A DNA stretch of 63,981 bases, filler included, from Octopus bimaculoides (lineage: Eukaryota), in the NCBI RefSeq assembly GCF_001194135.2. It is 5 parts of 5 records of this genome, joined end to end, with 100 filler letters (N's around TTAATTAATTAA, not from the genome) between each part and the next. Parts side by side here need not be neighbours in the genome. Positions count along the whole stretch, not along the records: positions 25,400 to 57,020 come from NC_068984.1; 4 more parts are not named here. One strand, 5' to 3'. Position 1 is the first letter of the stretch, and each line of letters starts with the position of its first letter. Position numbers and translations under genes: made by a program. Below the pieces are notes generated by a model. That model was not told the origin of the DNA. It did not search any database and saw only the letters and a program-made list of their open reading frames with translations. Shown piece by piece: positions 25,400-54,900 of the stretch.

Positions 25400-25844
25400 G
25401 TGGACAGGATGTTGTTCCTCGCCAGGAAAGTTGACTCCGAGGTAACGAGGCGGAGCGTGCAGAGAGTGGTTAGCAGCTGTGACAGGTGCCAGTCTATTGA
25501 CCCTGCTCCGGGCGTACATGAGGCGGGAAGTATTCCAATGGCCCACAACTGGAAACGACTGGCAGTGAACGTACCTCTCAATGGTTGACTGCAGACCGGG
25601 GCGGATGGCCATATGGAGGGAGATGAAGACGGGGACTGCAGAGGAAATCACAGGAGTGTTAAATGGGATATTCCTGGAACGAGGCCCCGTGGATGAGCTG
25701 CTGCTGGATAATGGCACTGCATTTCGCTCGGAGGCGCTGAAAGAAATGCTTGACAGGTGGCAGGTCAGCCACTTCTTCAGGGCGGCATACCGGCCAAGTG
25801 GAAATGGAGTGGTGGAAAGGCATCATCGTACCATCAAGACCATG
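25400..25844 (+). mobile_element. Gypsy/Ty3 LTR retrotransposon integrase fragment
   Basis: CDRC zinc-knuckle half followed by integrase core motifs ELLLDNGTAF and YRPSGNGVVERHHRTIK; frame break near 25575. Confidence 0.9.
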
Positions 25845-26511
25845 NNNNNNNNNNNNNNNNNNNNNNNNNNNNNNNNNNNNNNNNNNNNNNNNNNNNNNNN
25901 NNNNNNNNNNNNNNNNNNNNNNNNNNNNNNNNNNNNNNNNNNNNNNNNNNNNNNNNNNNNNNNNNNNNNNNNNNNNNNNNNNNNNNNNNNNNNNNNNNNN
26001 NNNNNNNNNNNNNNNNNNNNNNNNNNNNNNNNNNNNNNNNNNNNNNNNNNNNNNNNNNNNNNNNNNNNNNNNNNNNNNNNNNNNNNNNNNNNNNNNNNNN
26101 NNNNNNNNNNNNNNNNNNNNNNNNNNNNNNNNNNNNNNNNNNNNNNNNNNNNNNNNNNNNNNNNNNNNNNNNNNNNNNNNNNNNNNNNNNNNNNNNNNNN
26201 NNNNNNNNNNNNNNNNNNNNNNNNNNNNNNNNNNNNNNNNNNNNNNNNNNNNNNNNNNNNNNNNNNNNNNNNNNNNNNNNNNNNNNNNNNNNNNNNNNNN
26301 NNNNNNNNNNNNNNNNNNNNNNNNNNNNNNNNNNNNNNNNNNNNNNNNNNNNNNNNNNNNNNNNNNNNNNNNNNNNNNNNNNNNNNNNNNNNNNNNNNNN
26401 NNNNNNNNNNNNNNNNNNNNNNNNNNNNNNNNNNNNNNNNNNNNNNNNNNNNNNNNNNNNNNNNNNNNNNNNNNNNNNNNNNNNNNNNNNNNNNNGAATG
26501 ATCTATAGATC

Positions 26512-29474: not shown

Positions 29475-29576
29475 TTATACAACAACCTCATCCATTATGA
29501 CTTTAGAGGCAAATGCTACAGAAAAGGCAAGAAGGATTCCCACAATGGCATTATATGTCAAGGCAAAGTTAAAAAC
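29475..29576 (-). CDS. 7TM gene exon 9 (VFNFALTYNAIVGILLAFSVAFASKVIMDEVVV*)
   Basis: ttgcag acceptor, phase 0, TAA stop. Confidence 0.88.
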   Translation of the reverse strand, partial: VFNFALTYNAIVGILLAFSVAFASKVIMDEVVV

Positions 29577-31902
29577 CTGCAATGAGAAGAAAAAATAGCA
29601 AATATATAAATGAGTGACATTAGGACATACAAATGTGTCACACATTTTTATGCATATGCTAGATAAAGAGATAATCAAATGCATGATAAAATATACAAAT
29701 GACAAGCATCAAGCAAATGAACATCTACTTGTATGCCAGTGACCAGCTAACAACAAGTTAGTGAACAACTACCAGCATGCGAGCGATTAGATATCATGAT
29801 GCTTATGAACAGGTAACAACATCATCAATTAACATCTTTTTTCCATGCTGGCATGAACGACAGTTTGACAGGAGATAGTCAAGTCAGAGAACTGCACCAA
29901 GTTCCATTGTCTGCTTCAGTATGGTTTCTACAGCTGGATGTCCTTCCTAACACCAGTCACTTTACAGAGTGTACAGGGTGCTTTTTATGTGACACAGTCA
30001 TCAGCAGGGTCACCAAGTAGCTTGTGGGATGAAGACCTCTCAGCTGGGAGAGGGACTGGAACTAAGGGATGTAGCTTTGATCCAGTTGAGAGGTTAAAGT
30101 ATAATAGAGGGACAGAAATAGGTATCTTACTATAGAGGAGATACTTTGCTATCCCTGTAGGGAGAGAAAGGAGAGATAGAGTTAAACAAAAATAGATGGT
30201 GGAACAGTGAGTGTGTGTGTGTGTGTGTTTGTGTGAGGGGAGTATGGAACTTCTACCTACACTTCTTCTATATATTAAGCAGGGTCATCTCCCTGAAAGG
30301 ATTGATGCTTTGTCTGCTTTCCTACTTACTAGGATTTTGGTCTTTGCTAAATTAACTCTATGGTCTTTTAATTCCAAACCATCCTGTCCTTGTTTTCTCC
30401 AGAGATATTAAGAACTACATTATCCAATGTATAATGTATCATTCATTTCTTAAAACAGAAATGGGAGTACAGTTTGAAGGATATTTTGTCTGTTGGTTTT
30501 AGCAAGTGATTACATGAAGGCTCTTGCTGGCTTGTAAGGTATCTGCTGGAGGTTGATCTGTCAAGGCACCGTCAATCAATATACTCATTAAATCAACCAC
30601 TCAGATTGACAAAAATACATATATTTGAAAGATGTTGAAAAATGGTGTGTGTTTGTGTGTGTGTGTGAATGAGTTTGATTATAATCTCCAAAGGATCTGT
30701 CCCCATCTATCAGTGGTATAATACAGATTGAAAGAGTAATCCAAGCAAGAAAACAATGGGTTAATGTCTAATAATACACACCGTCATCTGTAGAGGTTGC
30801 TGGTTGAGAAACAAGAGGAGAAAGAGGCGATCTTCAGTTGGACACATACACTGAAACAGATAGTTGCGTATATAGTTAGGTATTAGGTAGTTGTTGGTTA
30901 AGGTGAGTCATATAGCAGCATTTCAAATTAAAGATATCTATCTATCTGACAGAATTTAAACATAGGGGAGATAAAATGAAATACAGTAAAGTAAACTAGC
31001 TTGATACTCTATTTATTTCAGTTATTTTATGACTAATGATAAAATTAAAGGTGAGAGGAGTCAATGGGAGAAAACTTAAGCAGAAGATATTTTTGTTTTT
31101 CTAAAACTATTTTTGAAAGACTTTCTCTAAAAGGCACAGAAACATTCTTGGAGAAATGTTGAATTTCTTCCACTAACTTTTCCCTTCAAATGAAAATCTT
31201 AAGTTTTATCTATTTTTGTTGATTTATTCTTATGTTAGTTTTTTTTTTCATTTAATTGGTAAAGGCAAGTTACTTTCCCTAGCTTCTATGTGATCACTCA
31301 AACTGCTGGAAATCACGCCCAAATATTTCTCAATCACATGCTACCATCTTTATAAAAGAGGCAGATTTGATAATGTTTTCCTAGGTACATTGCATCTGAG
31401 TAAAAGATGGAAAGGGAACCAATAAAATGCTTTTGATTTAAGATCTGTTCAATCAGAGCTGAACTTAGGATAAACAAAATCAAATTGAAAGAGTCGGTGA
31501 TGAACCCTCTTATGATCGAGTGACTTGCTAGAAATAGCAGTCTAATAGCAAATTAAACCCTTTCATTAGGAAAAAAAAATATAAGGAAGGGTACATTAAC
31601 AATAATGAATCAATTGAAACACAGCTCAACAAATAAATGAAACTAAATTTGACACTTACTCTGATCATACGCTGGCCTTCAGCATTTGCTTCAGCAAATG
31701 CAGAAGATATGAGTAACAGAAGCAAAAGTGGCAAGATGAATTCTACAATACCCAGAAGAGTGGCTTTATGAGACATCCAAAATATAATATAATTAGCACA
31801 CCATAGTACAATCAGGACAATCCAGCTGGCCAGCCAGCGTTGCAGATAGGCTGATGTTGTACGCATACGGAACTGTAACGCAAAGAAAGATATATTGAGA
31901 CA

Positions 31903-31947
<45 letters not shown>

Positions 31948-33235
31948 TAAATAATATGTAAATATATGCATATATCCATACATATATGTACATGCCTACA
32001 TATATATGTATATATATATATATGTAGGTATGGGTACAGGACATAAAAAAATGCATATATGGGTACAGGACATCAAAAAAACGTTAAACACAATGAGAAA
32101 TGAAAACAGAAAATGAGCTTTTTTTGAACAACGAAAAAAAACAAACAGAGAAACAAGACATGCAACCTAAAGAGTATACCCCTTCGTCAGTTGTCCCTGT
32201 TTCATCTACTCTGTGTAATGTGTTGTGAATTTATGGAAAGAAATCCCATAAAATTCAACAATTTAGTTAAAAATGGAGAAGAGAGGTTAAAATATATAAG
32301 AAAATTTTAATTCATGTAGACGATCGTTGCGTACAGAGATATAAAAATCATGCAAATTCATGGTTAAATTGAATTGAATTAAATTAATTATAAGAAACAG
32401 AAATAAATTTATTTCTCAAACACGTGATAATGCTATAAATAGCATGATCAGGATAAATTATCCATACAATGCAGAAAAATACGTTACTGGCCAATCCTGA
32501 TCACGCTATTTATAGCATTATCACACGTTTGAGAAATAAATTTATGTCTGTTTCTTACAATACATCTCAATGCTTCTAAAAACAAACTTTGTTTGTTTAC
32601 TTTCATCGTAAAGTTGAATTTAAATTAATTATATATCAATGTACTCTTCAATGCAAGAAGTATAAACAAAATTTTTACAAAGAACTTGAGAAAGAATAGA
32701 ATCTAGGAGATTCATATTTATCCTTATGAGAAAAAGAGATGTGAGTCTAGTTAGGTATTAACTACAACTAAGGCTATAGTGGTTATTTGAAAATATAAGA
32801 GGTTTCAGAGATGTTCCCTCTAGAAATGAGTAAGCAGATTAGAAATTTTAACTCCAAATAAGTCACGTAGGGCAAAAATTGTATAGAAACGTTCAATGGA
32901 AAGACATGGCTACATTTGAATTAAAATATGACCTGACAGTTAAAAACAATACTTAGTGTGGTGTATATTTTTAAAAAAATTAATACATGAGAATGAAGTT
33001 AATCTAGAGGAGATAGTGTATAAAGAGCTACTTAACGTAAACAAGTGTTAGAGAGGTAAAAAGGGTTAAAGAGAGAATAAGATGCATAAGATGGACTTAT
33101 GTTTGCATAAGAACTAATATTCGTTAGTATGTATTAAATATAAGGTAGGAAAAAAAAAAAGAAAAATGTTTCTCTCAGCAATTTGCTAAGTGCATTGCTA
33201 CTGATTAACGACTCATCATCATCGTTGTGTATATT

Positions 33236-33266
<31 letters not shown>

Positions 33267-36200
33267 AATACAATGAGAACTTGTGTATATATGAATGAGG
33301 TACAATGGGAATCTGGATATCTGTATGCAAGGTATGTTGTGTCTGATGAGATGCAGTAAGATAGTAAGGGTGTTTATAAAGGAGGGGCACTGAAACATTT
33401 AGAATACATTATGAAAGAGAGAACAGAAGGGGCAGAAAGAAGTTGAAAAATAGAGAAAGAACTAATTACAAACAATGCAAACCGTACTCACAGATATTTT
33501 CCAGTAGGACATCAATATATCATCATTTGTCATCATTTCTGATGCCATGTTATGTGGTTGAGTATTTTCAGGTGGCTGAAGAAATAAAAATGATAATTAA
33601 CTCTAACAATAACAGTAACAATAATGACTTAATCAAATTGGAACAAGGCCACAGATTCAAAGAGGAAATGTATAGTTAACTGGATTGATGCCAGAATATG
33701 TCTGGTATTATTAGTGTGATGAAAGGTAAGTTCATATAATAGATGTCTTTCATCAGACTTCTTGTTTTTCATCCTTGTTTCTAGCTTCCCTCCTAATATA
33801 AGAAGAGCAATGCCAGCCAACAAGTAAAGGTTATTAATGTTAGAGGGTATGATATGTATTGTTTAGTACTTTGTCCCTGTGATATGTGGCAAGAGGAGCT
33901 GATCACAAAACTTATAAAACAGTCTACTTCAAGACTGTGTAGTAACTCCATTATTGCTTGATGTCCACACAAAGGATGAATCAAAAGATAACAATACCAA
34001 ATGTTTTGTCTCTGATTGTTACTTTAAAAGCAATCTAAGGTCTTACTATAAAGAAAATAATACAATTGCTAATCTTGTGAAAACACAAGTTTCTGCACTT
34101 CATCATAGATTGAAACCCCCCCCCCCAAAAAAAAAATAATGGTATAGAACAAAGGTGAAGCACTGCTAGAATTCCAGATATCTTGGGATGTCTGAGATTC
34201 TGCCAGTGTTCAACCTTAATATTAAATGATGAGGTGGGAGACGATAGGCAGTGAGATGGAGGATGATGTGCAGTAATGCTAATTATGATGATGATAGAAA
34301 AAATTTTAGGAAACCAACTGCTTCCATTTGTACAGCTTGATCGGATATTGCTTCAGGCAAACAACCTTCATTCTTGTTGTCATCATCGTGATTTGAAGGG
34401 GTGACAATTTGGGAAGGGCTCTCTTCAGTTGGTAGTGTTGGTCTTGAAACTGGCCTGGGCATTTGGCTATTGTTGTCACAATTATGTCCATTCCTGTTAC
34501 AGTCATCATTCCATACACATTCATCACAGAAATCTAGAACAGGGAAGAGTGAAAGGCAAAAATAAAATCACAATCTTAGATTATTGTAGTCACTAGAGAG
34601 ATGAAATGGCTGATGGGATGAAACATTGAAACAGAAATCTCTTTGTGTCACTGAGCAGGACATTCTTCAGTTAACCTAGCTACCAAGAGAAAAGGATATA
34701 ACATATATTAGGAATATCAACTGAGGAAGTAGGGGATATGTTATCTATTTAAGCACAATAGAAACGAGAATTAATGAGCCACTGTGTTTTGAAAATATTA
34801 ATTAATACATCACAATAATTAACAAATTCTTGTATTGGCACAAAGTTACAAATTTCTATAGTGGCTGAGTAGTAAATTGAATTTATGTCAGTACATTACT
34901 ACTACTTATTTCAGAAACTCTTGCAAAGGGTTTTTGAAATGGAAAAAATTAAACTTCATGAAGTATTTTGTCTATTTCAACCATTCCATTGTCTTTATAA
35001 GTAACTTGTGGTAAAGGTACAAGGCCATAAATTTTACAGGTGGTTGTAGTTGAATATATACCACTGTATTCAACCACAATAATTGACTGGTACTTATTAC
35101 CAAAACAATGAATAGCAAAGTCAACCTTAGAGACAAAATGGAGTTTGAAATCAGAAGGGAAAGCAATGCATCTAAAGCCTGCAAAGGATGTTGCCTGATG
35201 ACCTATTGATTCTGCTATCTGTTACCCTCTTAATATAATTATTTATTTATCATCATCACCATTTAACATCCATTGTCCATGCTGGTATGACCAGGATTGA
35301 CCAGGATTGGTAAGCTGAGGGGTTGCAGCAGACTCCAGTTTGATTTGGCATGGTTTCTATGGTTGGATGCCCTTCCTAACACCAATATATATATTATTTA
35401 CATTATTTACATTGGACAGAGTATATGGAGTGGCAAATCAATGGCAGGATTTGAACTCAGACCACAAAAGTACGAGCTAAATATTGCAAGGCATTTTGTC
35501 AGGCATTCTTATAATTTTGCTATCCATTACCATTCATTCAAAGTGGTAAGAATAAAAGTTTATAATTTGAAAGCTAGATTTTTGTGTGAAAGGTAAATTC
35601 AAGAAACTAAAGATATAACTGAAGCAGTAGCAGTGTTTACTCTGAGAAAGTTTTGAGTGAGATTATTATAACAAATAGTCTCACAAATCTATACTTGCAA
35701 GCTAGCTTATCCCCAGTCCTAATTCATAACTAAATTATAGTATACTTTTGATGGGGTTGGCCAAGCAAATTAGCAATAGAATGAACATGCAGAGAAACAA
35801 CACCTGTGACAATGGTCATGACAGTAGCAACAACAGAAGAGAGGAGCTTCTGTGTTTGTAACCCTTGCAATAAATATATACAACCAAATATATCTTGATT
35901 CACAGCCTACCATCATAAAAAGGAAGAACATAGTATTGTAGTTGAAAGATAACACTAAAAAGGTAAGATAGTCATGATTATAATGCTCTTGGTCAGAAGT
36001 CCATAAGTTGACCTAAGGCTAAACAACAGCTATATATACCACATGTCTTTTGTAGCTGAAGTGTGGTTTAACAAAAGCAACGACAACATCAACAATAGCA
36101 AATGAAGCACTAACCTGCTCCTAAACCTGAAGAGAGACTATCGATGTCAACATGGCGAACTCCAGTTCGAGAGTTCTGATATTTCCAGTAAGCATCATAA

Positions 36201-39200
36201 CTTTGACCATCAACTTCTAACTCTCGAATAAACCGACGGATTCCTGAAAGAGGAAGGAAAAAACAAACTGAACAAGCAAAAGAAAGTGTCTATCTAGGAT
36301 CTACATCCAGAACACATAAAAACACACATCTCTCAAATAAAAAGGGAATGATTGTAAATTACGAAACAGAAATTACTAGAAATTTAGGTAATTATCTGGA
36401 ATTACCAATCTGTGAACTTAATACCAATATTGCATCATCAGTGCTTTCAAATACCTGTGAACCACAATCTACCCCTATTTGAGAAACAGTATTATTACAT
36501 TCCACTTGAAAACTTTAACTGCCTCCAAGTCATCTTCTAGATACATTTGATTGAAATCCAGTTGATTGAATTTACATTATGTCTTCTAAAATTTGCCATA
36601 CCTTATTATTTGCGGTGAGTTTCCCACCACCACAAAAAAACAAGAAAAACTCTCAAATATCTGCGACCAGACATTGTTAGCAGCATAATTCTGCACTATC
36701 TTTATTCTGATTGACTGATCTGTTGTTAGATTGACTGGATTTTAACATGGAGTTTGAAAATTCCTACTATTATCGGAAATTTGGTTCAGCATATGTGAAA
36801 TTCATAATAAACTGAGAATATGTCCCAAGTGGGTTGATATTCATACTTCCTAGTATATTTTGTATGTACTCTTACATTACATTATTTCTATATCAGGTTA
36901 TTGAGAACTCTGTGACTAATAAAACTATATCAAAAGAGGTTTTGAAAAATATTTACCCATCTATCTATCTGTCTATATAATAAAGTAAAACTGAATAAGA
37001 TAATGGATGTATGTTTTAATGGCTGCATTGACTGCCATTATGTAACTATTAAATACATTTTGTGGAAAATTTCAAAGAAATATTTTAAGGAATGCATATA
37101 TGCAATACTTACCAATAGTGTGGGTTCTGCAAACAGAGAGAAGGATGAAGCCCACCATGCAATTCCAGATCAATGCAAAGACACCAAAACTGACTTTACA
37201 GGAGAATGCAATCAGGCACAGTGCATTCGTAACCCCAATTTGCTGACAAGATTCAGCTTGGAAATTGATCCAAGAATGGTAAGAGTTCACACACATCAAC
37301 ACCAGACTTATCAAAAACAGCAAACCAGTGGAACTGATCTTAAAGACTGTCCTAGAATGCATGCGAACGCTATCAGCAAAATTTTTATTGCTGATCAGTC
37401 GCCCAGCAAGATCATTAGCATAAATTCCTTTGAAATAGAAATAAAATAAAACAGTTATATAAAAATATGGTAATTTGATTGAAATATTCTTAGACAAGTC
37501 TAAAAAAAGATTTATTACAAATGGCAGAGAAACGTCTTTTATTCTTTATATCATCATAGCCTGCACACAGTTTAGCATTATTTCTAAAATAAATTAGAAT
37601 TAATTTGATAGTAATGACTATTTGCAAACATAGGTGAAGGTATTGTCATGTGGTTAAGAAGTTTACAATCTGTGGTTCTGTGTTTGATATGATTGTGCAG
37701 CCTTTTTGTCTAAAATAACCTTGGGTCAAGCCAACTGTGCGAGTAAAATTCAGTAAACAAAGTCTATGTAGAAGCCTGTCAAATGGATTGTATCAGTCCT
37801 AGGTTAATAGGATACCTTTAGCAGAATACACTCTATAGCACTCATTAAAACCAGGATGTTTGTCTGGAGATAACTCCTCTCCACATTGTTTTCGACCAGT
37901 CTCAGAGACCCTGTAAAAAGTCACAGGCACTATTCTTCTTCCTCTAAGAGAACAAGAATTAAAGGCTAGTATAGAAATAAAAAATGTAAAGAATTTAGTG
38001 TAATAAAAAGTATCAAAATTTAAGGAAAATTAAAAACGAAGTAGTAAAAGTAAAATAGTAAAGAAAGTCAAAACATACCAATGGCGACCCAAGAAAAACC
38101 AATCAGTATAGAAACAGAACCTATAAGCACAGTAGTACGTGTGTAATTGCTGAGGACATCCAACACGATGTACCAGGCTGATGCTACACTGAATGAAAAG
38201 GCAAATGTTAAGGTAAGCATATGCAATATAGTTCCAACCAGAGGTGTATCATTTGGATGAATTTTCACACCAAGAGAGCGTGAAAACAATTTCCACAACC
38301 ACTGAGGCCACTTCCTTGACAGATGTACATGCTTCTGACTTCGTGTTAGCGATTCACCAGTGAATTCTTGTGGAGTTCTGTTCTCTGTGAGATTCCGACC
38401 GACAGAAGTATAATACAAGATGGAAGCATTTCGTTTCTTTCTGGAAGAAATGGAAAATTATAAATAAAGTAACAAACTGAAAACAAAATTACAAATAAAA
38501 TAACACAAAATATCAAAAACTAAAAGATAATGAAAGGTAATGAGACACAGCAAATATTGTAATGTAAATCAATTTTGTTTATTTCAGTTTTATTTGTTGT
38601 TTTGATATTTAAAATTTTAATGAAACAAATAGTTTCAGAAAGTGAAATCTTTGAGAAAAAATATAAATAAAAAGTGAAATTGGAGTTTAAAGTTGAATAA
38701 AAGTGTTATCTTAAGGAAATTCAAATCAATAAAAGCTATCATTGCATGTATATTTATATCAGCTTATATGTTTGTGTGTGTTTACACACACACACATCTA
38801 ATTTTTAAGGCAGTTGGTATATCAAGAAAGCTGATTTGAATAATATAATTTCATCTTCATCATTTTACTTTTACCTTTCCATTCTGACATGGGTTAGATA
38901 GGTTTTCTGAGTCACTGTTTCACATTTGGATATTCTCTCTGTCACTGCTCACAACACATACAGACACAGTGTACTATTCTAAAACTAGGCTACAGATGGG
39001 TAACAATATAAATATTTTGTATTAAAATAAAGACAACATTTAAGGTGACAATCTAATCAGCAACTAAAATGGTCAAAGGTTTATTAAATAGAAAACTATC
39101 AGAAGTCATAATCTAAATATATTTTAATAGGTGTTGCAAATTCATATCAAATTTCTAATATATATTATTAGTAGCAGCCAATATAGATAACATACATTGA

Positions 39201-42200
39201 CATTATGTCATAAATACATACAGGAAGTGGAGAATAATTAAACCAGTATCAGTATATAATTAGTAGTTATTCTATTAAACCTTGAGAAAATGACGGAGTC
39301 TCTACATGGTCAATCAATTTGTGAGGAATAGTGCAAAAATCTTCCTCAAATTACACACTGTTATCTTGAAAAAGAAAGGACATATTAGACAATACAGTGT
39401 AGGATACACAACACCTGAAAAGAAGATGATATGGGCATAAATGGAAGGGTTGCTTCAGCAGTGCTGACTTGGAACAAAATAATGATTTCAAATGAATGAA
39501 AGATAAAATCAACTCCAGTAAGATTAGAATGAAACTGAAAGGTATTTAGTCAGCACTGTTCTGTTTCTTCCATGATATTATTTTGGCTACCTCAAACATA
39601 ATCATTAGGTCTCAGTAAGCTGATTTAATGTAAGATACCAGTCAATTACCTGAGTGAATGATGGTTTCTGTAGCATCACTGTTGTCTCAATGGCTCAGTC
39701 CATTTAGTTGTAGATATGAACATTCCCAAGTCTCAATCAACTTGGTCTTTGTACAGAGAAGTAAACCTTTTATCTGTATCCTTGATATATTGTAATGATA
39801 ACATTTTCAGACTGTCATATTTTTCAGGTATTTGTCTCTTACATTTATATTTAGATCTCCAGTTATCTTCCCTATATTTGCTCATCCCAACAACACTTGG
39901 CAGGAGTAACTTGGACTCTCTCTAGGCACATTGAGTAGTAAGTAAACTTGGAAGCAAGCAATTAACAGCAACATTGTTCAGAGGGAGCAAAGAGGTGGCT
40001 GTGGCTGTGGTGGTAGCCGGCGGTGGTTGACGGCTAATAAGGTTGTTGTCGTTGGTATCGAGCACGAGTGTGTGTGCCGGTCGGCGCATGAATGCGATGT
40101 GATCTCTGCCCAGTGCTCTGAAGTGAAGACATGCTGGACAAAGTGTGGGCAAACAGTGGGAGTAACTCGGACTCTCTCAGGTGCACTGAGTAGTAAGTAA
40201 ACTTGGAAGCAAGCGAGCATAGGTCACAGGTTAAGATATAAAGAGTGTTATAGCTATGCGAGTTCAAACCCAACCAACAAATATATAAATAAATGTAAAC
40301 TGAAAATGATTGGAGTTCAAACTGATGGAAATGTAGTGTAGCAGAAAAATAGATAAATGATGAGATTGTGATAAGATTTGGAAAATTTTTAGATGAAGTA
40401 ATTCTTAAAATATCTTCCTTACCTCCCTTCGAAACAACTATTGTGCTTTTATTACTAGCTTCAATTCCATCAGAAAATAAATAAGAGATGGTACAATTAG
40501 CTGCTGTCAGTATCAGAAGACACTGTCACTAATAGAGGACATAGGGTAAGAGTAAGACCCTCTTTGGTCAATAATGACCATGGGATTACACCTAGAAAGT
40601 TCCCCTCCAAGGCAAAAGTCTGGGCAAGGTTGTTTATGGAAGACCAGCAGTCGTCCATACATACCAGCCTTCTTTCTCCATGCTACTGATGTTATCCAAG
40701 GGAAAGGCCGATACAGCTTGACACCAGTGACATTGCAACTCATTTCTATAGTGAATTGGAGCAACATGAAATAAAGTATCTTGCTCAAGAACACAACACA
40801 CAGCCTGGTCTGCAAATCAAACTCATTACCTCATGATTGTGAGCCCAATGCTCTAACCACTGAGCTATGATATATCTACCATCTACCACTAACAGATAGA
40901 CCTACTAACACTGTTAGATATATCCAACAACTGAATGACACTTTCTTCATGTATCCTATGTACATAGGTAGAAGGAAGGAAAGACGAAAAGATATCACTT
41001 GTGCTTCTCTGAAGCATTGCTGGGTTACAAATGGAGACATTATTGTCATTTCTCTTGTCAACAAAAATGGTATACAAGCTAAGTTCCTTTGAAGATGAGT
41101 GGAATAAGAGACCTTAACTAGAACAAAAAAAAAACACACATGGAAGAGTTAGCAACAGGACATACATGGAAGATCAACACAAAAGACACCAAAGATCCAG
41201 TGATGAGAACCAAATTTCAAGAATATGTTGAAGAACAGCTCCAAAACTTAGATAGCTCATCCCCTGATGACATGTGGAACAACATGAAATCAACAATATA
41301 TGATTCTGCATCGAGGGCCTTTGGAACAGATCGACTTTCCAAGGATGACTGGATTGAAGCCAATGCCATTACTTGAGAAAAAGTGCAAGATCTTCATAAA
41401 GCACAATAGAAAGTACAAAACAACAGCTATGTGCTGCAAAATCCCACCTTCAAAAAGAAACTAGAAAATGTGCCAACCAATACTGGGATAAATTATGCTT
41501 AGAAATTCAACAGGCGAGTAACATGGGTAACATCAGGAAAATGTATGAGAAGATTAGAGTTGCTATCGGACCAACAGTGAGTAAAGTGGCACCCCTCATG
41601 TCTGCAACAGGTGACCAGTTGACGGACAAGAAGAAGCAAACGGAAAGATGGGTGGAACATTACTCTAAATTGTACACAAAGGAGTGAGATATAAGAGATT
41701 AGACATCAAGACAAAGATCAGGATTTATGAAGCATGTGTTCTCAGAACATTCCTCTATGGATCTGAAACATGGACCTTGTACAGCAGACAGGAAAGGTGC
41801 CTTAGTATTTTCCATCTCAGATGCCTCCGCAAGATCTTAGGCCTAACATGGCACGACAAGGTCACCAATGTTGAAGTTCTGACCCAGGCGAATCTTCAAA
41901 GCATGACTGATATCTTCTATATGAGAAGACTGAGGTGGCTGGGGCATGTCAAGAGAATGGATGACCGTCGAATCCCGAAGCAAATGCTCTATGGAGAACT
42001 GGCCCAGGGCAAGAGATCAAGAGGAAGACCAAAACTGAACTATAAGGACACTTGCAAAACTAGTTTGTCCAAGTGTGAGGTGGATGTCAGCACCTGGGAA
42101 GAGAGGGCTGAGGACAGAACAATATGGAGGACTGTGGTGAAGGAAAGGAACTGCTTCGCTCGAGAGCAGCTACAGAAACAAACAAATTCAGAAACGTCAG

Positions 42201-42518
42201 TGGCGAAAGGAAAACAACAGAAATGCAGAGCACCGAGCTATCCTCTTGGAATGCAAATACTGTGACAGAAGCTGCGCTTCAATCATAGGAAGAATCAGCC
42301 ATGAAGTAAGCTGCAAGAAAAGGAGCCCCTGATATGTTTGATTAAGTGACCTCTAAGCTAAATTGACCATCTGCATAAACGAAAAGTAAATATAAGAAAA
42401 TAGAGAAAAAATATAGTGGATACTTATTTAATTTTATTTGTATCACGATGAAAACATATCTAACAGTGTAATACAAATAAAATTTAAAGTAGCAGAATCA
42501 ACATCCTCATTTTTAACA

Positions 42519-42582
<64 letters not shown>

Positions 42583-43814
42583 ATTACGATTAGTATTTGT
42601 CTCTTCAACTAAGAAGACTATGAATTTCTAAGGAGGTCTAATAAGATCGAAATATATCAGTTACTTTCACTGGTTGGCTTTCAAAAATCGAATTTTCAAT
42701 TCACTCTATGACCTATGTGAGACTCGATCGGCTTTGTAAGAGTTATCTCCCCTACCTATAAACGAACCTTCACGCTTTAAAATTTAATCTTTACATTAAA
42801 AGACATGTCAATTTTGATGGTAGAAACGGATCAAAGGGTTCCAGCAGTAATCATGCCGACCTTTTTTTTTTTTAATTCAGTCATAGTATACTTTAAACTG
42901 CATGTTTTGAGAGAGATTCATCTATTGATTTGCTAACTTAGTTAGCTGGCATGCAACCCTTCAATTTGTGCAAAACGATGTTCACGTAAACGGAATGCCG
43001 AGAAACTATTACATGAAGCTGACATCAGATAATGGATAATGACTTTAAAAACTTTGTTACTACTATAACTGGAAGATCAAAATGATAAAAGAAGCAAAAG
43101 ATATATATGATAATAATGATGAAGTATATAGAAAATTGTGGTAAAAAGTTTCTTCCATTTTCATTGGCCTGCAATTGTTACTTTTACTCCTGTAATATAA
43201 TTGAACGATTGAAGATGAATATAATGAAAAAGAGAGGACATTGTTTTGTTTTGTTTTTGTCACCGAGCTATAGGAAGAGTGGCAGCACTTTTGATCTTCA
43301 AGGATTTTGAGACTGTTAGGAAGACGTAAACAGCACTGATTACATCGCATTCAACAAATTCATTTATACCAGTTTATCAACGAATGGAAAAATGTTTCAA
43401 TTCTTAGAGCATCAGCTAAGGTTAAAGATTAGGGTCAACAAAATAAAGTGGAATAAATGACTACGAAACAGCACTGAAAGGTTTTTGTTCAACCCCAGTT
43501 AGGACACCAAAGTACAAAAAGAAAAGAAGCTCATTCTAGAATAGTAATCAAAATTTTATCAAAAGTGTAAAGACAAGTAAGGAACAAATATCTTTAATGC
43601 ATACTCAAAGGTACCTAAATTGGTTAAAATAAGAATCCAGTTTTTAAAACTTTGATTGCTATAGTTCCGAGAAATGTAGATATATTTCTAATAATCCGAC
43701 ATATATACATTTCGATTCACTAGTTTGGTTTGAATTCAGAAAGACTAATGAATAGGACAATACTTACCGCATCAGATTATCAAATTCATGTGACGGAGAA
43801 TGTATCCACGACAT
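29475..43814 (-). CDS. Uncharacterised 9-exon, 511-aa predicted 7-TM membrane protein; candidate gustatory-receptor-like / DUF3537-like 7TM ion channel
   Basis: Nine GT-AG exons (47+362+315+129+215+84+213+69+102 = 1536 nt) splice into one open frame from ATG 43814 to TAA 29475. Seven hydrophobic segments by eye. The family call is inference. Confidence 0.85.
30782..30850 (-). CDS. 7TM gene exon 8 (CMCPTEDRLFLLLFLNQQPLQMT)
   Basis: tttcag / gtgtgt, phase 0-0; not in the ORF track. Confidence 0.85.
31660..31872 (-). CDS. 7TM gene exon 7 (TM5, TM6; ends FAEANAEGQRMIR)
   Basis: ttacag / gtaagt, phase 0-0; ORF 31528..31983. Confidence 0.9.
32020..32215. mobile_element. Penelope-like repeat fragment
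   Basis: Internal duplication ATATGGGTACAGGACAT; minus strand carries CAA-CTGACGA-hairpin...GCATGTC-TTG. Confidence 0.4.
32389..32559. mobile_element. MITE-like foldback with ~64-bp inverted arms
   Basis: 32391-32454 is the reverse complement of 32494-32557 with 4 mismatches. Confidence 0.75.
33492..33575 (-). CDS. 7TM gene exon 6 (PPENTQPHNMASEMMTNDDILMSYWKIS)
   Basis: strong polypyrimidine acceptor tttttatttcttcag / gtgagt, phase 0-0. Confidence 0.85.
34319..34533 (-). CDS. 7TM gene exon 5 (Cys/acidic loop: DFCDECVWNDDCNRNGHNC...)
   Basis: ttctag acceptor, phase 1; donor GCA|gttggt inferred from the phase 0 required by exon 6. Confidence 0.7.
36115..36243 (-). CDS. 7TM gene exon 4 (IRRFIRELEVDGQSYDAYWKYQ...)
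   Basis: tttcag / gttagt, phase 1-1, open frame. Confidence 0.85.
37113..37427 (-). CDS. 7TM gene exon 3 (TM3, TM4; ends LSVCRTHTIG)
   Basis: tcaaag / gtaagt, phase 1-1; ORF 37072..37497. Confidence 0.88.
38079..38440 (-). CDS. 7TM gene exon 2 (N-terminus, TM1, TM2)
   Basis: ttccag / gtatgt, phase 2-1; ORF 38068..38418. Confidence 0.88.
39903..40214. repeat. ~57-bp direct repeats flanking a 199-bp GC/CpG-rich core
   Basis: 39903-39959 and 40159-40214 share GGAGTAACT.GGACTCTCTC...TGAGTAGTAAGTAAACTTGGAAGCAAGC. Confidence 0.85.
40555..40868 (-). mobile_element. tRNA-headed SINE family C. Other copies, approx.: 910-1040(+), 54210-54520(-), 57850-58030(-)
   Basis: tRNA-like head followed by GTGTTGTGTTCTTGAGCAAG(A/G)(T/C)ACTT block. 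Confidence 0.7.
41135..42325 (+). mobile_element. RTE-clade LINE, 5'-truncated and internally deleted, in intron 1 of the 7TM gene
   Basis: KTKIRIYEACVLRTFLYGSETW, RRLRWLGHVKRM and RSRGRPKL motifs; C-terminal C-x2-R-x-C-S-x-IG-x-x-SH; RT core missing. Confidence 0.9.
43768..43814 (-). CDS. 7TM gene exon 1 (MSWIHSPSHEFDNLMR)
   Basis: ATG plus consensus donor CG|gtaagt; phase 2 matches the exon 2 acceptor. Start codon is tentative because the frame stays open upstream. Confidence 0.65.
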
Positions 43815-50776: not shown

Positions 50777-51984
50777 CAAGATGCAAGAGGTATTTGAGGA
50801 TGTAATTAGTACTTTAAAATTTGTGTACATGTTCTCAATAAGCTTTCTTAGAAGAATTTTCTATGAAACCACCTTCAGCTTCAATGATTATTTCAATGCG
50901 GGACAGGAATCATTGACATGCCTGTATGAAATATTCCTTATTCATTTTGAATACCAGCTGAACAATAGCAGCCTTCCACGAAGCTATGGGATTGTCAGGA
51001 TGTTCATTAGTCTTCTTTGCAACAACACTTCAAACATCCATGTAATTTAAATCTAGCAAGTTTGATGTTACATGATCATAAAAACTTTCAGACATCCATT
51101 CTTTGGTTATGTGGGCTTGTGAAAAAAGTGCTAAGTTTTGTTGAAATATGCATGGCCTTCTTCTGTGTCCTTCATCCATTCAGCATTCAACAGCTGTCTC
51201 CAGTGCCTCAACATATCCAGGAGCATTAATTCCAAGAACTTGTGGAAAAATGTGAGGTGGCATGACATGGCCTTCATTACTCACCACTTCTAACACTATC
51301 ACAGTTGCTGGAAACTTAGTGTGCAAATTCTTCTGATGAGGGCATTAGAAGAATCTGCACATAACCATCTGTCAGTTCTCTTGTTAGACTTTGGCCTTGG
51401 TCAAAATATTTCTCATCAGAAAAAAACCAAAGCATGTCTTGTTCTTGAGGGTTTTTAATCATGTTAAGTAACTGCTTGGCACAGACCAGTTTTCCTATTT
51501 TTGCAGACATGAATTGGCTTCTCTCCTTAATATCTACAAGTTGTATCAAATGTCCTCACCCACTGCAGTTCTGACAGTCCATTCCAATGCCTGAAGTTCT
51601 TTTGTGATGGACCTCATTGATTTTCCAGGATCATCATTGATAATGTTTTGAATCTGCTGGATGAAACTGATGTCCTCATAGTGTCCAAATATTTAGAATT
51701 TAAAAAAAAAATTTTGTCTCCTTGCTACAGTTTAAACATTCCTGTTAGAGGATTCCAATTCTACCTGAATTTTGTGTACAAAAGATCTTGCAACATTTAG
51801 AAAACTGACAATTTCAAAATTGCTGTGTTCTGCACATAAGGCAACAATGACTGCATGTCTTTTCATTTCTTCAGGGAACAGTTTATCTGCTATAGGGGAT
51901 CTGAAAATAAACAAAATCTTTTTGATTGGTTTGAAGGGAGTAACATACTGATAATTAAGAGTCCTCAAATACTCTGTCACCTTG
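50777..51984 (-). mobile_element. Tc1/mariner DNA transposon relic
   Basis: TA flanks at 50775-76 and 51985-86; degenerate TIRs CAAG(A/G)TG...GAG(G)TATTTGAGGA; transposase fragments MKRHAVIVAL...FLNVARSFVHK and WFFSDEKYFDQ. Confidence 0.85.
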
Positions 51985-54900
51985 TAGACACACAAATATA
52001 TATATATATAAATACATACACATAGGCAGGCATGACTGTATGGTTATGGATTTCACTTTATTATCCTGTGGTTTTAAGTTTTTTTCTCAGTGCATGGCAT
52101 CTTAGGCAAATTTCTTCTGTAGCCTTGGGTTAACTATTTCCTTGAAATCAGTGTAGGGAAACTGTATAAAAGCCCGTCATACAATCATATATACATGTGT
52201 ATGTATGTAGATATATGTATGCAACAAAACCTCCATAAATTAGAAACCCATACTAGAATAAGAATCCCAGTAAAGGACAATTATACAATATCAGTGTATG
52301 TTATAATACAATACTAATGTATGTTATATGCAACAAAATCACCGTAAACCAAGAACTCCTAAACAAGTTCAACCACACAAGAATTACAATTTTAATGAAA
52401 GGTAACTTGAAACAATGTGAGCACAAGATACAGAAAAAGCACATCACATGCATATTCCCATCTTCAGCTACCTAATGGACATCATTATGGTTTTGATACT
52501 ACATGTATATGTGCATTACTTTCTTAGACAACCCTAGAAATTATCAGCATAAGATGACAGTGGCTTGGTCTAAGCTAAGCCAGATATCATTTTCCTGAGA
52601 TAAAATGCAAATAGTTTGTCCCAAATGACACTGTAAACAAAATATTAATAGCTATCAGCTGTATTAGTGTAATGAGTGCTTATTTTGCTAAACCTATCAA
52701 CAAATGATCAGTACACAACATACATACATGTTTGTGAGTGTACATGCACATGTATCTGTTTATATGCTAATGTTCTGTGTACTTGCATAAAAAATATTGA
52801 GGAAAAGAAGAAGATGATGTTTATTGACATTCCTTGCTCATAAATCATCTCAGCTCTGTTTTTGAAAACAAATGGAATAAAAATTCTACTACTTAAAAAA
52901 CAGTTCAGGATCAGTAACAAGAAGGGCACCTAGCTGTAAAACTATGTCTCAATATACATTTGTCCAACCTGTGCTAGTATGGGAAAATGGACATAAAATG
53001 AATGAACATCAATTTATATGTGTCTCTCTATCTATCTATCTATATACACATAAACATATATGCAAACACACACACATATATACACATTCCCATATGCACA
53101 CACACACACATTAAATTAGTGGTGTAGTAATAGTATTTTTTTTATTGCTATGCTGTACAACAGAATACATCTACAGAAGGTTTTTTTTAGCCCATACTCT
53201 ATATTACAATAGATAGTGAACAGTCATATATGCCATGCTTGAATCAGATTTCATCAGCATCTATGCCCCCTCTCTAACTATTCTTGAACACACTGCTTAT
53301 AAACCCAGTTATTAAAGGATTAGGTAAAATGGACAGATCAACATGCATACATAACACTTTCTCGGCAGCTAATTTGAATATCAAATAAGTGGTGTGTTAA
53401 CAGAGCTGTAAGCTATACTTATGGGTTTACTTCTTTAAGAAAACACTGTTAATGTCACATTGAAAGTAGATACTTTGGTTAATTTACATATTTTTTTCTG
53501 TGACCAGAAAAAATACTGCATATATTTTTTCTTCATTTCTTAATAAGCAGAGCCTACAATGCACATTGTGACCAACTTATTAGCACTTCTAATTTCATAA
53601 GATCTTAGTCCATTCCAGCTCTTTTCGTTCCAAGCTTAAATTCTGCCAAGGCTAATTTTGCCTTTCACCTTTTCGAAGCCTATTAGATAAGTACTAGTCA
53701 AGAACTAGGTTGATATAATCAACTGAATCCCTCCTCTTAAAATTACTGACTTTGTGCCAAAATTTGGAACCATTCTTATCATTGCTATTATCATTATTAG
53801 TTGTATTATCAAGGCAGTGAGCTTAAGAATTGTTACAGTGCTGGGCAAAATGCTAAGTGGCATTTCATCCATCTTTATGTTCTGAGTTCAAATTCTGCCA
53901 AGGCCAACTTTGCCTTTCATCCTTTCAGGGTTGATAAATTAAATACCAGTGAAACACTGGGGTCAATGTAATCAACTAGTCCCCTTCCCACAAATTTCAG
54001 GCTTTATGCCTTTAGTAGAAAGGATTATTAGTTGTATTGTCACATCATTAATGACTGTGTCTTTGGAGTTACATCTACCGCATTCCTGACAGCTTATTCA
54101 GCCTCATTTTGACTGTAGTTTGATTTTAAAATATAAAAAAATGAATTTCATTCTTATGAGACAAAGTCAGTAAAGGTCAGAGTTTACAGGGACTACCAGA
54201 TTCATAGTGAATAAGTAGTGGCACTCCATTGGATACAACAATGAGTGTTCCAGTTGATCTGATCAATGGAACAGCTGACTTGTGAAATTAACATGCAAAT
54301 AGCTGAGTACTCCACAGATATGTGTATCCTTAATGTAGTTCTCAGGGTGATTCAGCATGACACAGAATGTGACAAGGCAGGCTCTTTGAATTATAGATAC
54401 AACTCATTTTTGCCAGCAATGTGAAATAAAGTGTATTGCTCAAGCACAAGGCACATTACCAAGAGTGAAACTCATGACCTCATCATTGTGAGTCAAATAC
54501 CTCAATCACTGAGTCACATGTCGTCACTATTCATAATGACAAAGCACGATATCTTATAGGTGCAGGCATGGCTGTGTGGTAAGAGGTCTCTTTCCCAACC
54601 ATATATGGTTCTGGGCCCAGTGCCATTGCATGGCTTTTGAGTGGGTGTTATCTACTGTGACCCTGAGCTGATCAAAGCCTTGTGAGTGGATTTGATAGAT
54701 GAAAGCTGAAAAAATGCCCATTGTATATTATGTGTGTGTGTATGTGTGTATGCATATATATATATATATATATAAATTGAAGAGTACAGTATTATATATC
54801 CATTACGGCCGATCTTACCTATCAGTTTCACACCAGGGATTCAACAGAATGTTAGGTAACAATTCAATTATGTAACCCTGCACTCTTCAGAGCTGGCAGT

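Follow-up and report, generated by a model that had tools for sequence, protein, structure and literature searches.

The seven-transmembrane ion channel (7TMIC) superfamily has long been viewed as a group of invertebrate chemoreceptors, and its deep history is still being pieced together from a handful of divergent lineages, namely the genes for gustatory receptors (Gr), odorant receptors (Or) and gustatory receptor-like proteins (GRL), together with GrlHz, DUF3537, PHTF and prokaryotic forms. Published data sets list a canonical octopus GRL (LOC106874590), an octopus GrlHz gene (LOC106874396) and PHTF. GrlHz, the family of Drosophila CG3831, has the 7TMIC fold, is widespread in animals including amphioxus, occurs at low copy number and is presumed to be non-chemosensory (Benton and Himmel 2023). 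Here, we analyzed a 63,981-nt window of Octopus bimaculoides DNA (GCF_001194135.2; all coordinates are positions in this window), in which the part taken from NC_068984.1 carries the gene LOC106876890 at 43814..29475 on the minus strand. We conclude that LOC106876890 is probably a member of an unnamed bilaterian family, orphan in Pfam and present in about one to two copies per genome, that is predicted from structural models to adopt the 7TMIC fold of the insect odorant and gustatory receptors (ORs and GRs). An initial examination of the DNA that used no databases (the sequence-only reading) had presented it as a cephalopod member of the superfamily. Because the octopus GRL, GrlHz and PHTF genes were already published, it would not be the only one.

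Nine exons splice into a protein of 511 aa, and a constrained search found only one gene model with GT-AG at all introns that reproduces it. Residue for residue, the spliced product matches XP_014781121.1, which RefSeq lists for O. bimaculoides as "uncharacterized protein LOC106876890 isoform X3" and which is exactly 511 aa long and begins MSWIHSPSHEFDNLMR. The nine in-phase exons of the sequence-only reading were thus recovered, although the gene is not hidden as that reading had supposed. RefSeq annotates it with five isoforms (one 90% cluster) and no assigned function, and the five obvious exons, used as a query, returned the LOC106876890 uncharacterized protein and its relatives. The intron phases are, in order, 2,1,1,1,0,0,0,0, the last four being phase 0 as had been read. 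The C-terminal peptides quoted at that stage lie within stop-to-stop open segments and are exact, but the protein ends ...KVIMDEVVV and not ...KVI. Hydropathy analysis shows four hydrophobic segments (~83–236), a polar stretch (~237–394) and three more segments, which agrees with the four helices, polar loop of ~150 aa and three helices first described.

We modeled the octopus protein with AlphaFold2 using a 27-sequence alignment. The model has a predicted local distance difference test score (pLDDT) of 74.5 and a predicted template modeling score (pTM) of 0.71, with the membrane helices near 90 and disorder only at residues 1–51 and 276–366. Helices were assigned to residues 62–72, 83–112, 120–149, 164–191, 204–267, 373–418, 423–455, 464–472 and 486–510. 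The conserved N-terminal helix (62–72) resembles a re-entrant "TM0" preceding the transmembrane helices (TM1 to TM7). A Foldseek search of the PDB returned insect OR/GR chains for 19 of the 19 best matches, including MhOR5, Gr64a, Gr43a, BmGr9, AgOR28, AaOR10 and ApOR5-Orco, at probability 0.95–1.0 and with target-normalized TM-scores of 0.47–0.64 over ~490–515 columns. The next matches were BAR domains, ABC transporters and G protein-coupled receptors (GPCRs), at probability ≤0.1 and a TM-score of ~0.1. As a replicate, we modeled the starfish orthologue with AlphaFold2 from an alignment whose sequences hardly overlap those of the octopus one (pLDDT 79.1, pTM 0.72). Its top 22 Foldseek matches are all OR/GR/Orco, including Orco 6C70. 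Insect OR/GR structures (Orco 6C70, MhOR5 7LIC, BmGr9 8UVT/8VC2, DmGr43a 8X82 and DmGr64a 8ZE0) are the sole credible PDB matches of both models. The earlier proposal of a 7-TM protein with an OR/GR-type fold is therefore supported by both predictions. We rejected a GPCR: the octopus protein contains no DRY-type or NPxxY motif, as had also been seen in the first examination, and GPCR structures match either model only at E > 3, probability ≤0.06 and TM-score ≤0.21.

The architectural features considered here are those set out for eukaryotic 7TMICs by Himmel, Moi and Benton 2023. Both AlphaFold2 models contain seven membrane helices, in line with the seven hydrophobic segments found by hydropathy. 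TM4 (204–267), TM5 (373–418) and TM6 (423–455) of the octopus model are long and reach into the cytoplasm, and the starfish model has long helices at 162–223, 339–384 and 389–422. TM7 is split in both, into 464–472 and 486–510 in octopus and into 430–438 and 452–477 in starfish. The outer loops, at 7, 12 and 4 aa, are shorter than the inner loops, at 14, ~160 and ~30 aa. Lysine and arginine total 13 on the cytoplasmic flanks versus 2 on the outer loops, and by the positive-inside rule this favors an N-in/C-out topology. The topology also draws on a conserved Cys197/Cys207 pair, which falls in putative outer loop 2 and could, judging from its position in the sequence, form a disulfide. Conservation is highest (0.55–0.60) in TM0, the TM4 and TM5 extensions, TM6, TM7a and TM7b, against 0.19 for loop 2 and the N-terminus; the same pattern of conserved regions has been reported for the 7TMIC superfamily. 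The strongly conserved cytoplasmic segments are SVCRTHTIGIRRFxxELE in TM4, ILxxYWKIxxRLRxTSxxLQRW in TM5, SAYAEVNxEGxR in TM6 and CPTEERxxLL in TM7a.

Several observations weigh against the assignment to the 7TMIC superfamily. None of 37 family members matched Pfam 7tm_6, 7tm_7, Trehalose_recp, DUF3537 or PHTF at E ≤ 10, and Pfam scans of single exons or of six full-length homologues gave nothing relevant. A family profile searched against PDB sequences produced spurious matches only (E > 0.1). For profile-profile comparison with hhalign, DUF3537 and GrlHz alignments were built from eLife 2023 source data, and reversed sequences served as the null. The match to DUF3537 was limited to 35–38 C-terminal columns (P = 0.0085–0.035), and the match to GrlHz (P = 0.07) had the same best-matching region, TM6-TM7a-TM7b. 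The scores for the family against DUF3537 and GrlHz were 24–29, within or near the range of the reversed-sequence controls (17–25, P = 0.03–0.2). Pfam, the PDB profile search and hhalign thus failed to connect the family to any 7TMIC family by sequence. The GR TM7 motif, (T/S)Yhhhhh(Q/K/E)(F/L/M), has no regular-expression match in the octopus protein and is missing at its expected depth in the outer half of TM7b. The canonical form TYhhhhhQF had already been called absent. This is correct for the full motif, although a conserved T485-Y486 does exist, and T485-Y486-NAIVG-I-L agrees with the GR motif in 3/4 letters. We rejected T485-Y486 as its equivalent, as the dipeptide lies at the inner, cytoplasmic start of TM7b, with 25 residues after Y486, and not in the outer half. 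The structural evidence is itself predicted and not experimental. Foldseek E-values are modest (4e-3 to 0.8), with a root mean square deviation of 7–10 Å, and Orco was probably within the AlphaFold training data. Finally, we infer a tetramer, a pore and conductance entirely from analogy.

These points raise the possibility of a resemblance without homology, produced by AlphaFold2 bias or by convergence, in which case the family would be a transporter, a GPCR-like protein or something novel. The lack of any profile-profile or hidden Markov model signal above the null and the modest Foldseek statistics are what such an explanation would draw on, but we regard it as very improbable. The two models, of different proteins and from largely different alignments, gave the same exclusive match list with a sharp gap to every other fold, GPCRs and ABC transporters included. 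The split TM7, the long TM4-TM6 and the N-terminal re-entrant-type helix were all reproduced, and the best local hhalign matches fall in the positionally equivalent TM6-TM7 region. Furthermore, GrlHz and DUF3537, an accepted 7TMIC pair, are just as undetectable to one another, with a mutual hhalign score of 24.6 that is not above the null. Because this accepted pair is equally unlinked in the same test, the sequence evidence is uninformative both ways, and the classification of LOC106876890 within the 7TMICs therefore rests on predicted structure.

We then compared the octopus protein with each known family. The octopus model agrees with insect ORs and GRs in its seven helices, in a TM4-TM6 region that is long and cytoplasmic, in the split into TM7a/7b and in a short N-terminal helix. 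Orco likewise has a long TM4-TM5 loop, and the short TM2-TM3 loop of the octopus protein is also Orco-like. However, sequence identity to insect ORs and GRs is 7–12%, and the octopus protein lacks Pfam 7tm_6 and 7tm_7 and, unlike GRs, TYhhhhhQF at the outer half of TM7b. Insect OR/GR families are large and fast-evolving, whereas the octopus family is single-copy and slow-evolving, and it occurs in echinoderms and amphioxus and was not seen in flies. We rejected GR/GRL membership since there was no 7tm_7, 7tm_6 or Trehalose_recp match and the GR TM7 motif was unmatched. SpurGRL1, too, is a different protein.

The plant DUF3537 family (PF12056) also has the 7TMIC fold and gave the sole local profile match, at the C-terminus (TEDRLFLLLFLNQQPLQMTVFNFALTY... 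versus FQKRQALVTYFENNRAGITVFGFTLDR...). Its C-terminal "YFENNRAGITVFGFTLD" aligns with TM6-TM7a-TM7b of the octopus family. This is the register that the sequence-only reading had pointed to, and hhalign reproduces it, but with a score not clearly above the reversed null. The long loop of DUF3537 lies between TM6 and TM7 and that of the octopus family between TM4 and TM5, and DUF3537 is found in plants while the octopus family is found in bilaterians. Membership was rejected for want of a PF12056 match and because the hhalign P of 0.0085–0.035 compares with 0.03–0.06 for the null. The GR/GRL or DUF3537 affiliation first suggested for the gene was accordingly abandoned, as no Pfam match was found among the 37 members at the cutoff given above.

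PHTF has the same superfamily fold and is conserved at low copy number. The PHTF type (Class-B 7TMIC) is defined by a long TM2-TM3 loop, whereas that of the octopus protein is 14 aa. With no Pfam PHTF match and a separate octopus PHTF gene, PHTF/Class-B membership was rejected as well. GrlHz is the closest analogue in evolutionary behavior, but it lacks a comparably long TM4-TM5 loop, and some of its members carry WD40/Nol10 fusions. The two families occupy separate loci in the same genomes: LOC106874396 (GrlHz) versus LOC106876890 in Octopus, LOC111612574 versus LOC111619963 in Centruroides, LOC106174731 versus LOC106152049 in Lingula, and LOC117117656 and LOC117101541 versus LOC117101789 in Anneissia. 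None of the accessions of the octopus family occurs in the GrlHz FASTA files, which are complete, of Benton and Himmel 2023. GrlHz membership was rejected on these distinct loci, on this absence and on the hhalign P of 0.07.

The named homologues are all annotated as "uncharacterized" or "hypothetical" and have no Pfam domain. They come from mollusks (cephalopods, gastropods and bivalves), the annelids Owenia and Paralvinella, the brachiopod Lingula, the nemerteans Tubulanus and Lineus, Seison and Priapulus. Arthropod members were found in a scorpion, decapods, a stomatopod, krill, a copepod and the hemimetabolous insects Anabrus and Blattella, and deuterostome members in every sampled echinoderm class and in amphioxus. 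No fly, nematode, vertebrate or cnidarian member was seen among the matches listed. An exhaustive profile search at E ≤ 1e-3 gave 421 clusters at 50% identity, many of them exon-sized fragments. Named genomes have one locus each and occasionally two (Patiria, Sinanodonta and Branchiostoma). Identity to the octopus protein is 79–86% in Argonauta, ~58% in another cephalopod, 40–46% in gastropods and bivalves, and 32–36% in the scorpion, the priapulid and echinoderms. The O. bimaculoides and O. sinensis proteins are 94% identical, with almost all changes in the N-terminus and long loop and a nearly invariant core.

Two relatives call for comment in their own right. A 697-aa protein of Elysia marginata (P0084) bears the UniRef name [quoted passage not shown] which is probably an automatic false positive, as Pfam finds no 7tm_1 in it. 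The most divergent full-length relative (P0144, also L011), at 19% identity, comes from the ENA metagenome ERZ4231652. Its C-terminus looks cut by an unrecognized intron, and it could widen the taxonomic range of the family.

A chemosensory role, which the sequence-only reading had favored, would make LOC106876890 a divergent GR-like ligand-gated channel for external chemicals, acting in the suckers or the olfactory organ. The fold is that of insect ORs and GRs, and a TY dipeptide is present in TM7. In Gr genes, the TM7b exon directly follows a phase-0 intron (PMC9998090), and the last intron of the octopus gene is placed in this way too; positional homology is beyond reach at such divergence. 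However, we saw one gene in Octopus and about one to two elsewhere, with no visible lineage-specific expansion. Identity between phyla remains 35–45%, and the two Octopus species hardly differ in the membrane core. The N-terminal half, which would bind ligands, is conserved as much as the remainder, and a separate canonical octopus GRL exists. Because of this deep conservation and low copy number, an environmental chemoreceptor is disfavored, to the point that we find it improbable, and a conserved cellular or physiological role, of the kind put forward for GrlHz and PHTF, is favored. The proposed chemoreceptor function thus finds no support in the single gene per genome (approximately), the near identity of the two Octopus proteins and the slow divergence across phyla. 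In its lifestyle, the family of LOC106876890 resembles GrlHz and PHTF more closely than a chemoreceptor repertoire.

We tentatively propose more than the fold, in a joint claim whose chances as a whole we put somewhat short of even. The family would be a previously unrecognized 7TMIC lineage, a channel-like protein, nearly single-copy, that goes back to the bilaterian ancestor and has a conserved role outside chemosensation. Lophotrochozoans, many arthropods, priapulids, echinoderms and cephalochordates would have retained it, and the usual model organisms appear to have lost it (flies; nematodes and vertebrates were not seen). It would also be the third 7TMIC lineage to reach chordates, after PHTF and GrlHz.

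To our knowledge, all 7TMICs whose mechanism is understood are cation channels built as tetramers (for example, structures 6C70, 7LIC and 8UVT). By analogy with Orco, ORs and GRs, four subunits of the octopus protein would assemble through a cytoplasmic anchor domain, formed by the near-invariant SVCRTHTIGIRRF, YWKIxxRLRxTSxxLQRW, AEVNxEG and CPTEER segments of TM4, TM5, TM6 and TM7a, respectively. TM7b would then line a central cation pore. Because there is a single gene, the tetramer would probably be a homotetramer. The variable, acidic, disordered part of the TM4-TM5 loop, ~100 aa long, may be a regulatory or trafficking region; this insert is alternatively spliced in isoform X2. As a gating signal, an endogenous or physical cue that is itself conserved is more likely than environmental tastants, because the family is single-copy and under strong purifying selection.

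The same fold and ancestry could also belong to a protein that is not a channel, such as a scaffold on intracellular membranes, a protein that handles lipids or a regulator. The family does not conserve the residues (Q/F) that form the pore gate in the GR motif. Four conserved cytoplasmic residues near the membrane, C236 and H239 at the end of TM4 and C456 and C458 in the TM6-TM7a loop, could from their sequence context form a metal site or be lipidated and so serve some other function. Benton and Himmel leave a completely different activity open for PHTF and GrlHz. Nevertheless, conservation in the protein is greatest in TM7b and the helices of the anchor domain, as expected if assembly and a pore matter. 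Since the mechanistically known 7TMICs, as far as general knowledge goes, are all tetrameric cation channels, we consider a non-channel protein unlikely, and a channel-like protein remains our preferred interpretation.

The gene itself already exists in RefSeq as an unnamed model; the literature searched mentions neither a 7TMIC fold for it nor the pan-bilaterian family. The family and its orthologues were not found in the eLife 2023 and 2020 supplements searched or in full-text literature; the Current Biology data deposit lay outside this search, and an earlier listing there is possible. The latest survey, that of Himmel, Moi and Benton 2023, included no formal screen of animals, and its authors reported that preliminary screening with Foldseek had brought up no obvious new animal-specific 7TMICs. 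Absence of the family from the model proteomes screened would explain why structure screens overlooked it. If our proposal is correct, a slow-evolving, low-copy bilaterian lineage that can be aligned from octopus to starfish and amphioxus would provide a new anchor point for the superfamily tree and show that one more 7TMIC persisted along the chordate stem. The role of a 7TMIC outside chemosensation could then be studied through a gene that is tractable and non-redundant in sea urchins, amphioxus, Platynereis, Parhyale and cephalopods. For octopus sensory biology, the message is one of caution, as LOC106876890 is unlikely to be a missing taste receptor.

The exons and isoform-specific features of the gene are listed in Table 1. 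When the 599-aa isoform X1 was compared with the window by tblastn, exons 2–9 matched at 100% identity. The X1/X2 first exon, which accounts for 104 aa of X1, the longest isoform, was not found in the sequence piece searched, and neither was that of isoform X4. Isoform X2 lacks VQMEA in the disordered loop because the internal donor in exon 5 is used. The candidate mini first exon of isoform X5 is suggestive only, as a pattern of this kind is expected by chance 0.14 times.

Table 1. Coding exons and isoform-specific features of LOC106876890 in the window (a slash marks an exon boundary)
Feature	Position	Strand	Content
Exon 1 of isoform X3	43768..43814	-	ATG 43814-43812; encodes MSWIHSPSHEFDNLM plus 2 bases of R16; donor GCG/gtaagt, phase 2
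Exon 2, aa 16-136	38079..38440	-	Disordered N-terminus, conserved N-terminal helix "TM0" (LSRKWPQWLWKLFSRSLGVK), TM1, outer loop 1, most of TM2
Exon 3, aa 137-241	37113..37427	-	End of TM2, inner loop 1, TM3, outer loop 2 (conserved Cys197/Cys207), TM4 up to invariant SVCRTHTIG
Exon 4, aa 242-284	36115..36243	-	TM4 cytoplasmic extension (IRRFIRELEVDGQSYDAYW...), start of long inner loop 2
Exon 5, aa 285-356	34319..34533	-	Inner loop 2, disordered acidic poorly conserved part
Internal GT donor in exon 5	34334 (exon end)	-	GCT/GTACAA; 15 nt inside exon; isoform X2 without VQMEA
Exon 6, aa 357-384	33492..33575	-	End of inner loop 2, start of TM5 cytoplasmic extension (MTNDDILMSYWKIS)
Exon 7, aa 385-455	31660..31872	-	TM5, 4-residue outer loop 3, TM6 and cytoplasmic extension (SAFAEANAEGQRMIR)
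Exon 8, aa 456-478	30782..30850	-	CMCPTEDRLFLLLFLNQQPLQMT; cytoplasmic half-helix TM7a (464-472 in model); phase-0 introns on both sides
Exon 9, aa 479-511 and stop	29475..29576	-	VFNFALTYNAIVGILLAFSVAFASKVIMDEVVV; membrane half-helix TM7b (486-510); phase-0 intron directly before
Candidate alternative first coding exon, isoform X5	38875..38882	-	ATGGAAAG/gt, leading into M-E-R...; sole match in window to required pattern

Indirect RNA support for the octopus gene model comes from mRNA contigs of an orthologue. This protein (P0003), at 58% identity, has an uninterrupted coding sequence on Logan contigs of 2.2–2.9 kb from seven sequencing runs. It is colinear with the octopus protein and shows no gap at 7/8 octopus exon junctions; the remaining junction, E4/E5, falls in the variable, poorly aligned loop. 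Other Logan contigs (L001-L003; SRR11869385, SRR11869390 and SRR11869391) were considered as octopus RNA for P0063 and rejected. They are genomic DNA from a related octopus species, with 90.8% identity to exon 2 and flanking intron sequence.

Traces of mobile elements and simple repeats lie in and around the gene. On the plus strand at 25581–25844, adjoining an N run at 25845–26495, part of an open reading frame (ORF) gave a hit to the integrase core domain of Pfam (rve, E = 1.3e-6); this remnant of a retrotransposon lies 3' of the gene and is cut by the assembly gap. Intron 1 holds a 193-aa ORF at 41684–42265 (plus strand, antisense to the gene), which we take to resemble the C-terminal part of ORF2 of a non-LTR (long terminal repeat) retrotransposon; Pfam did not confirm this. 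Short ORFs at 41140–41687 may belong to the same element. Two ORFs on the minus strand at 51316–51995, one of them with "FFSDEKYF," look like a decayed mariner/Tc1-type transposase, which Pfam did not confirm, as neither has a match there. An (ATT)n/(TA)n microsatellite at ~31900–31990 (minus strand) lies ~30 nt upstream of the exon 7 acceptor, and a long (TA)-rich repeat occupies 42513–42608 in intron 1.

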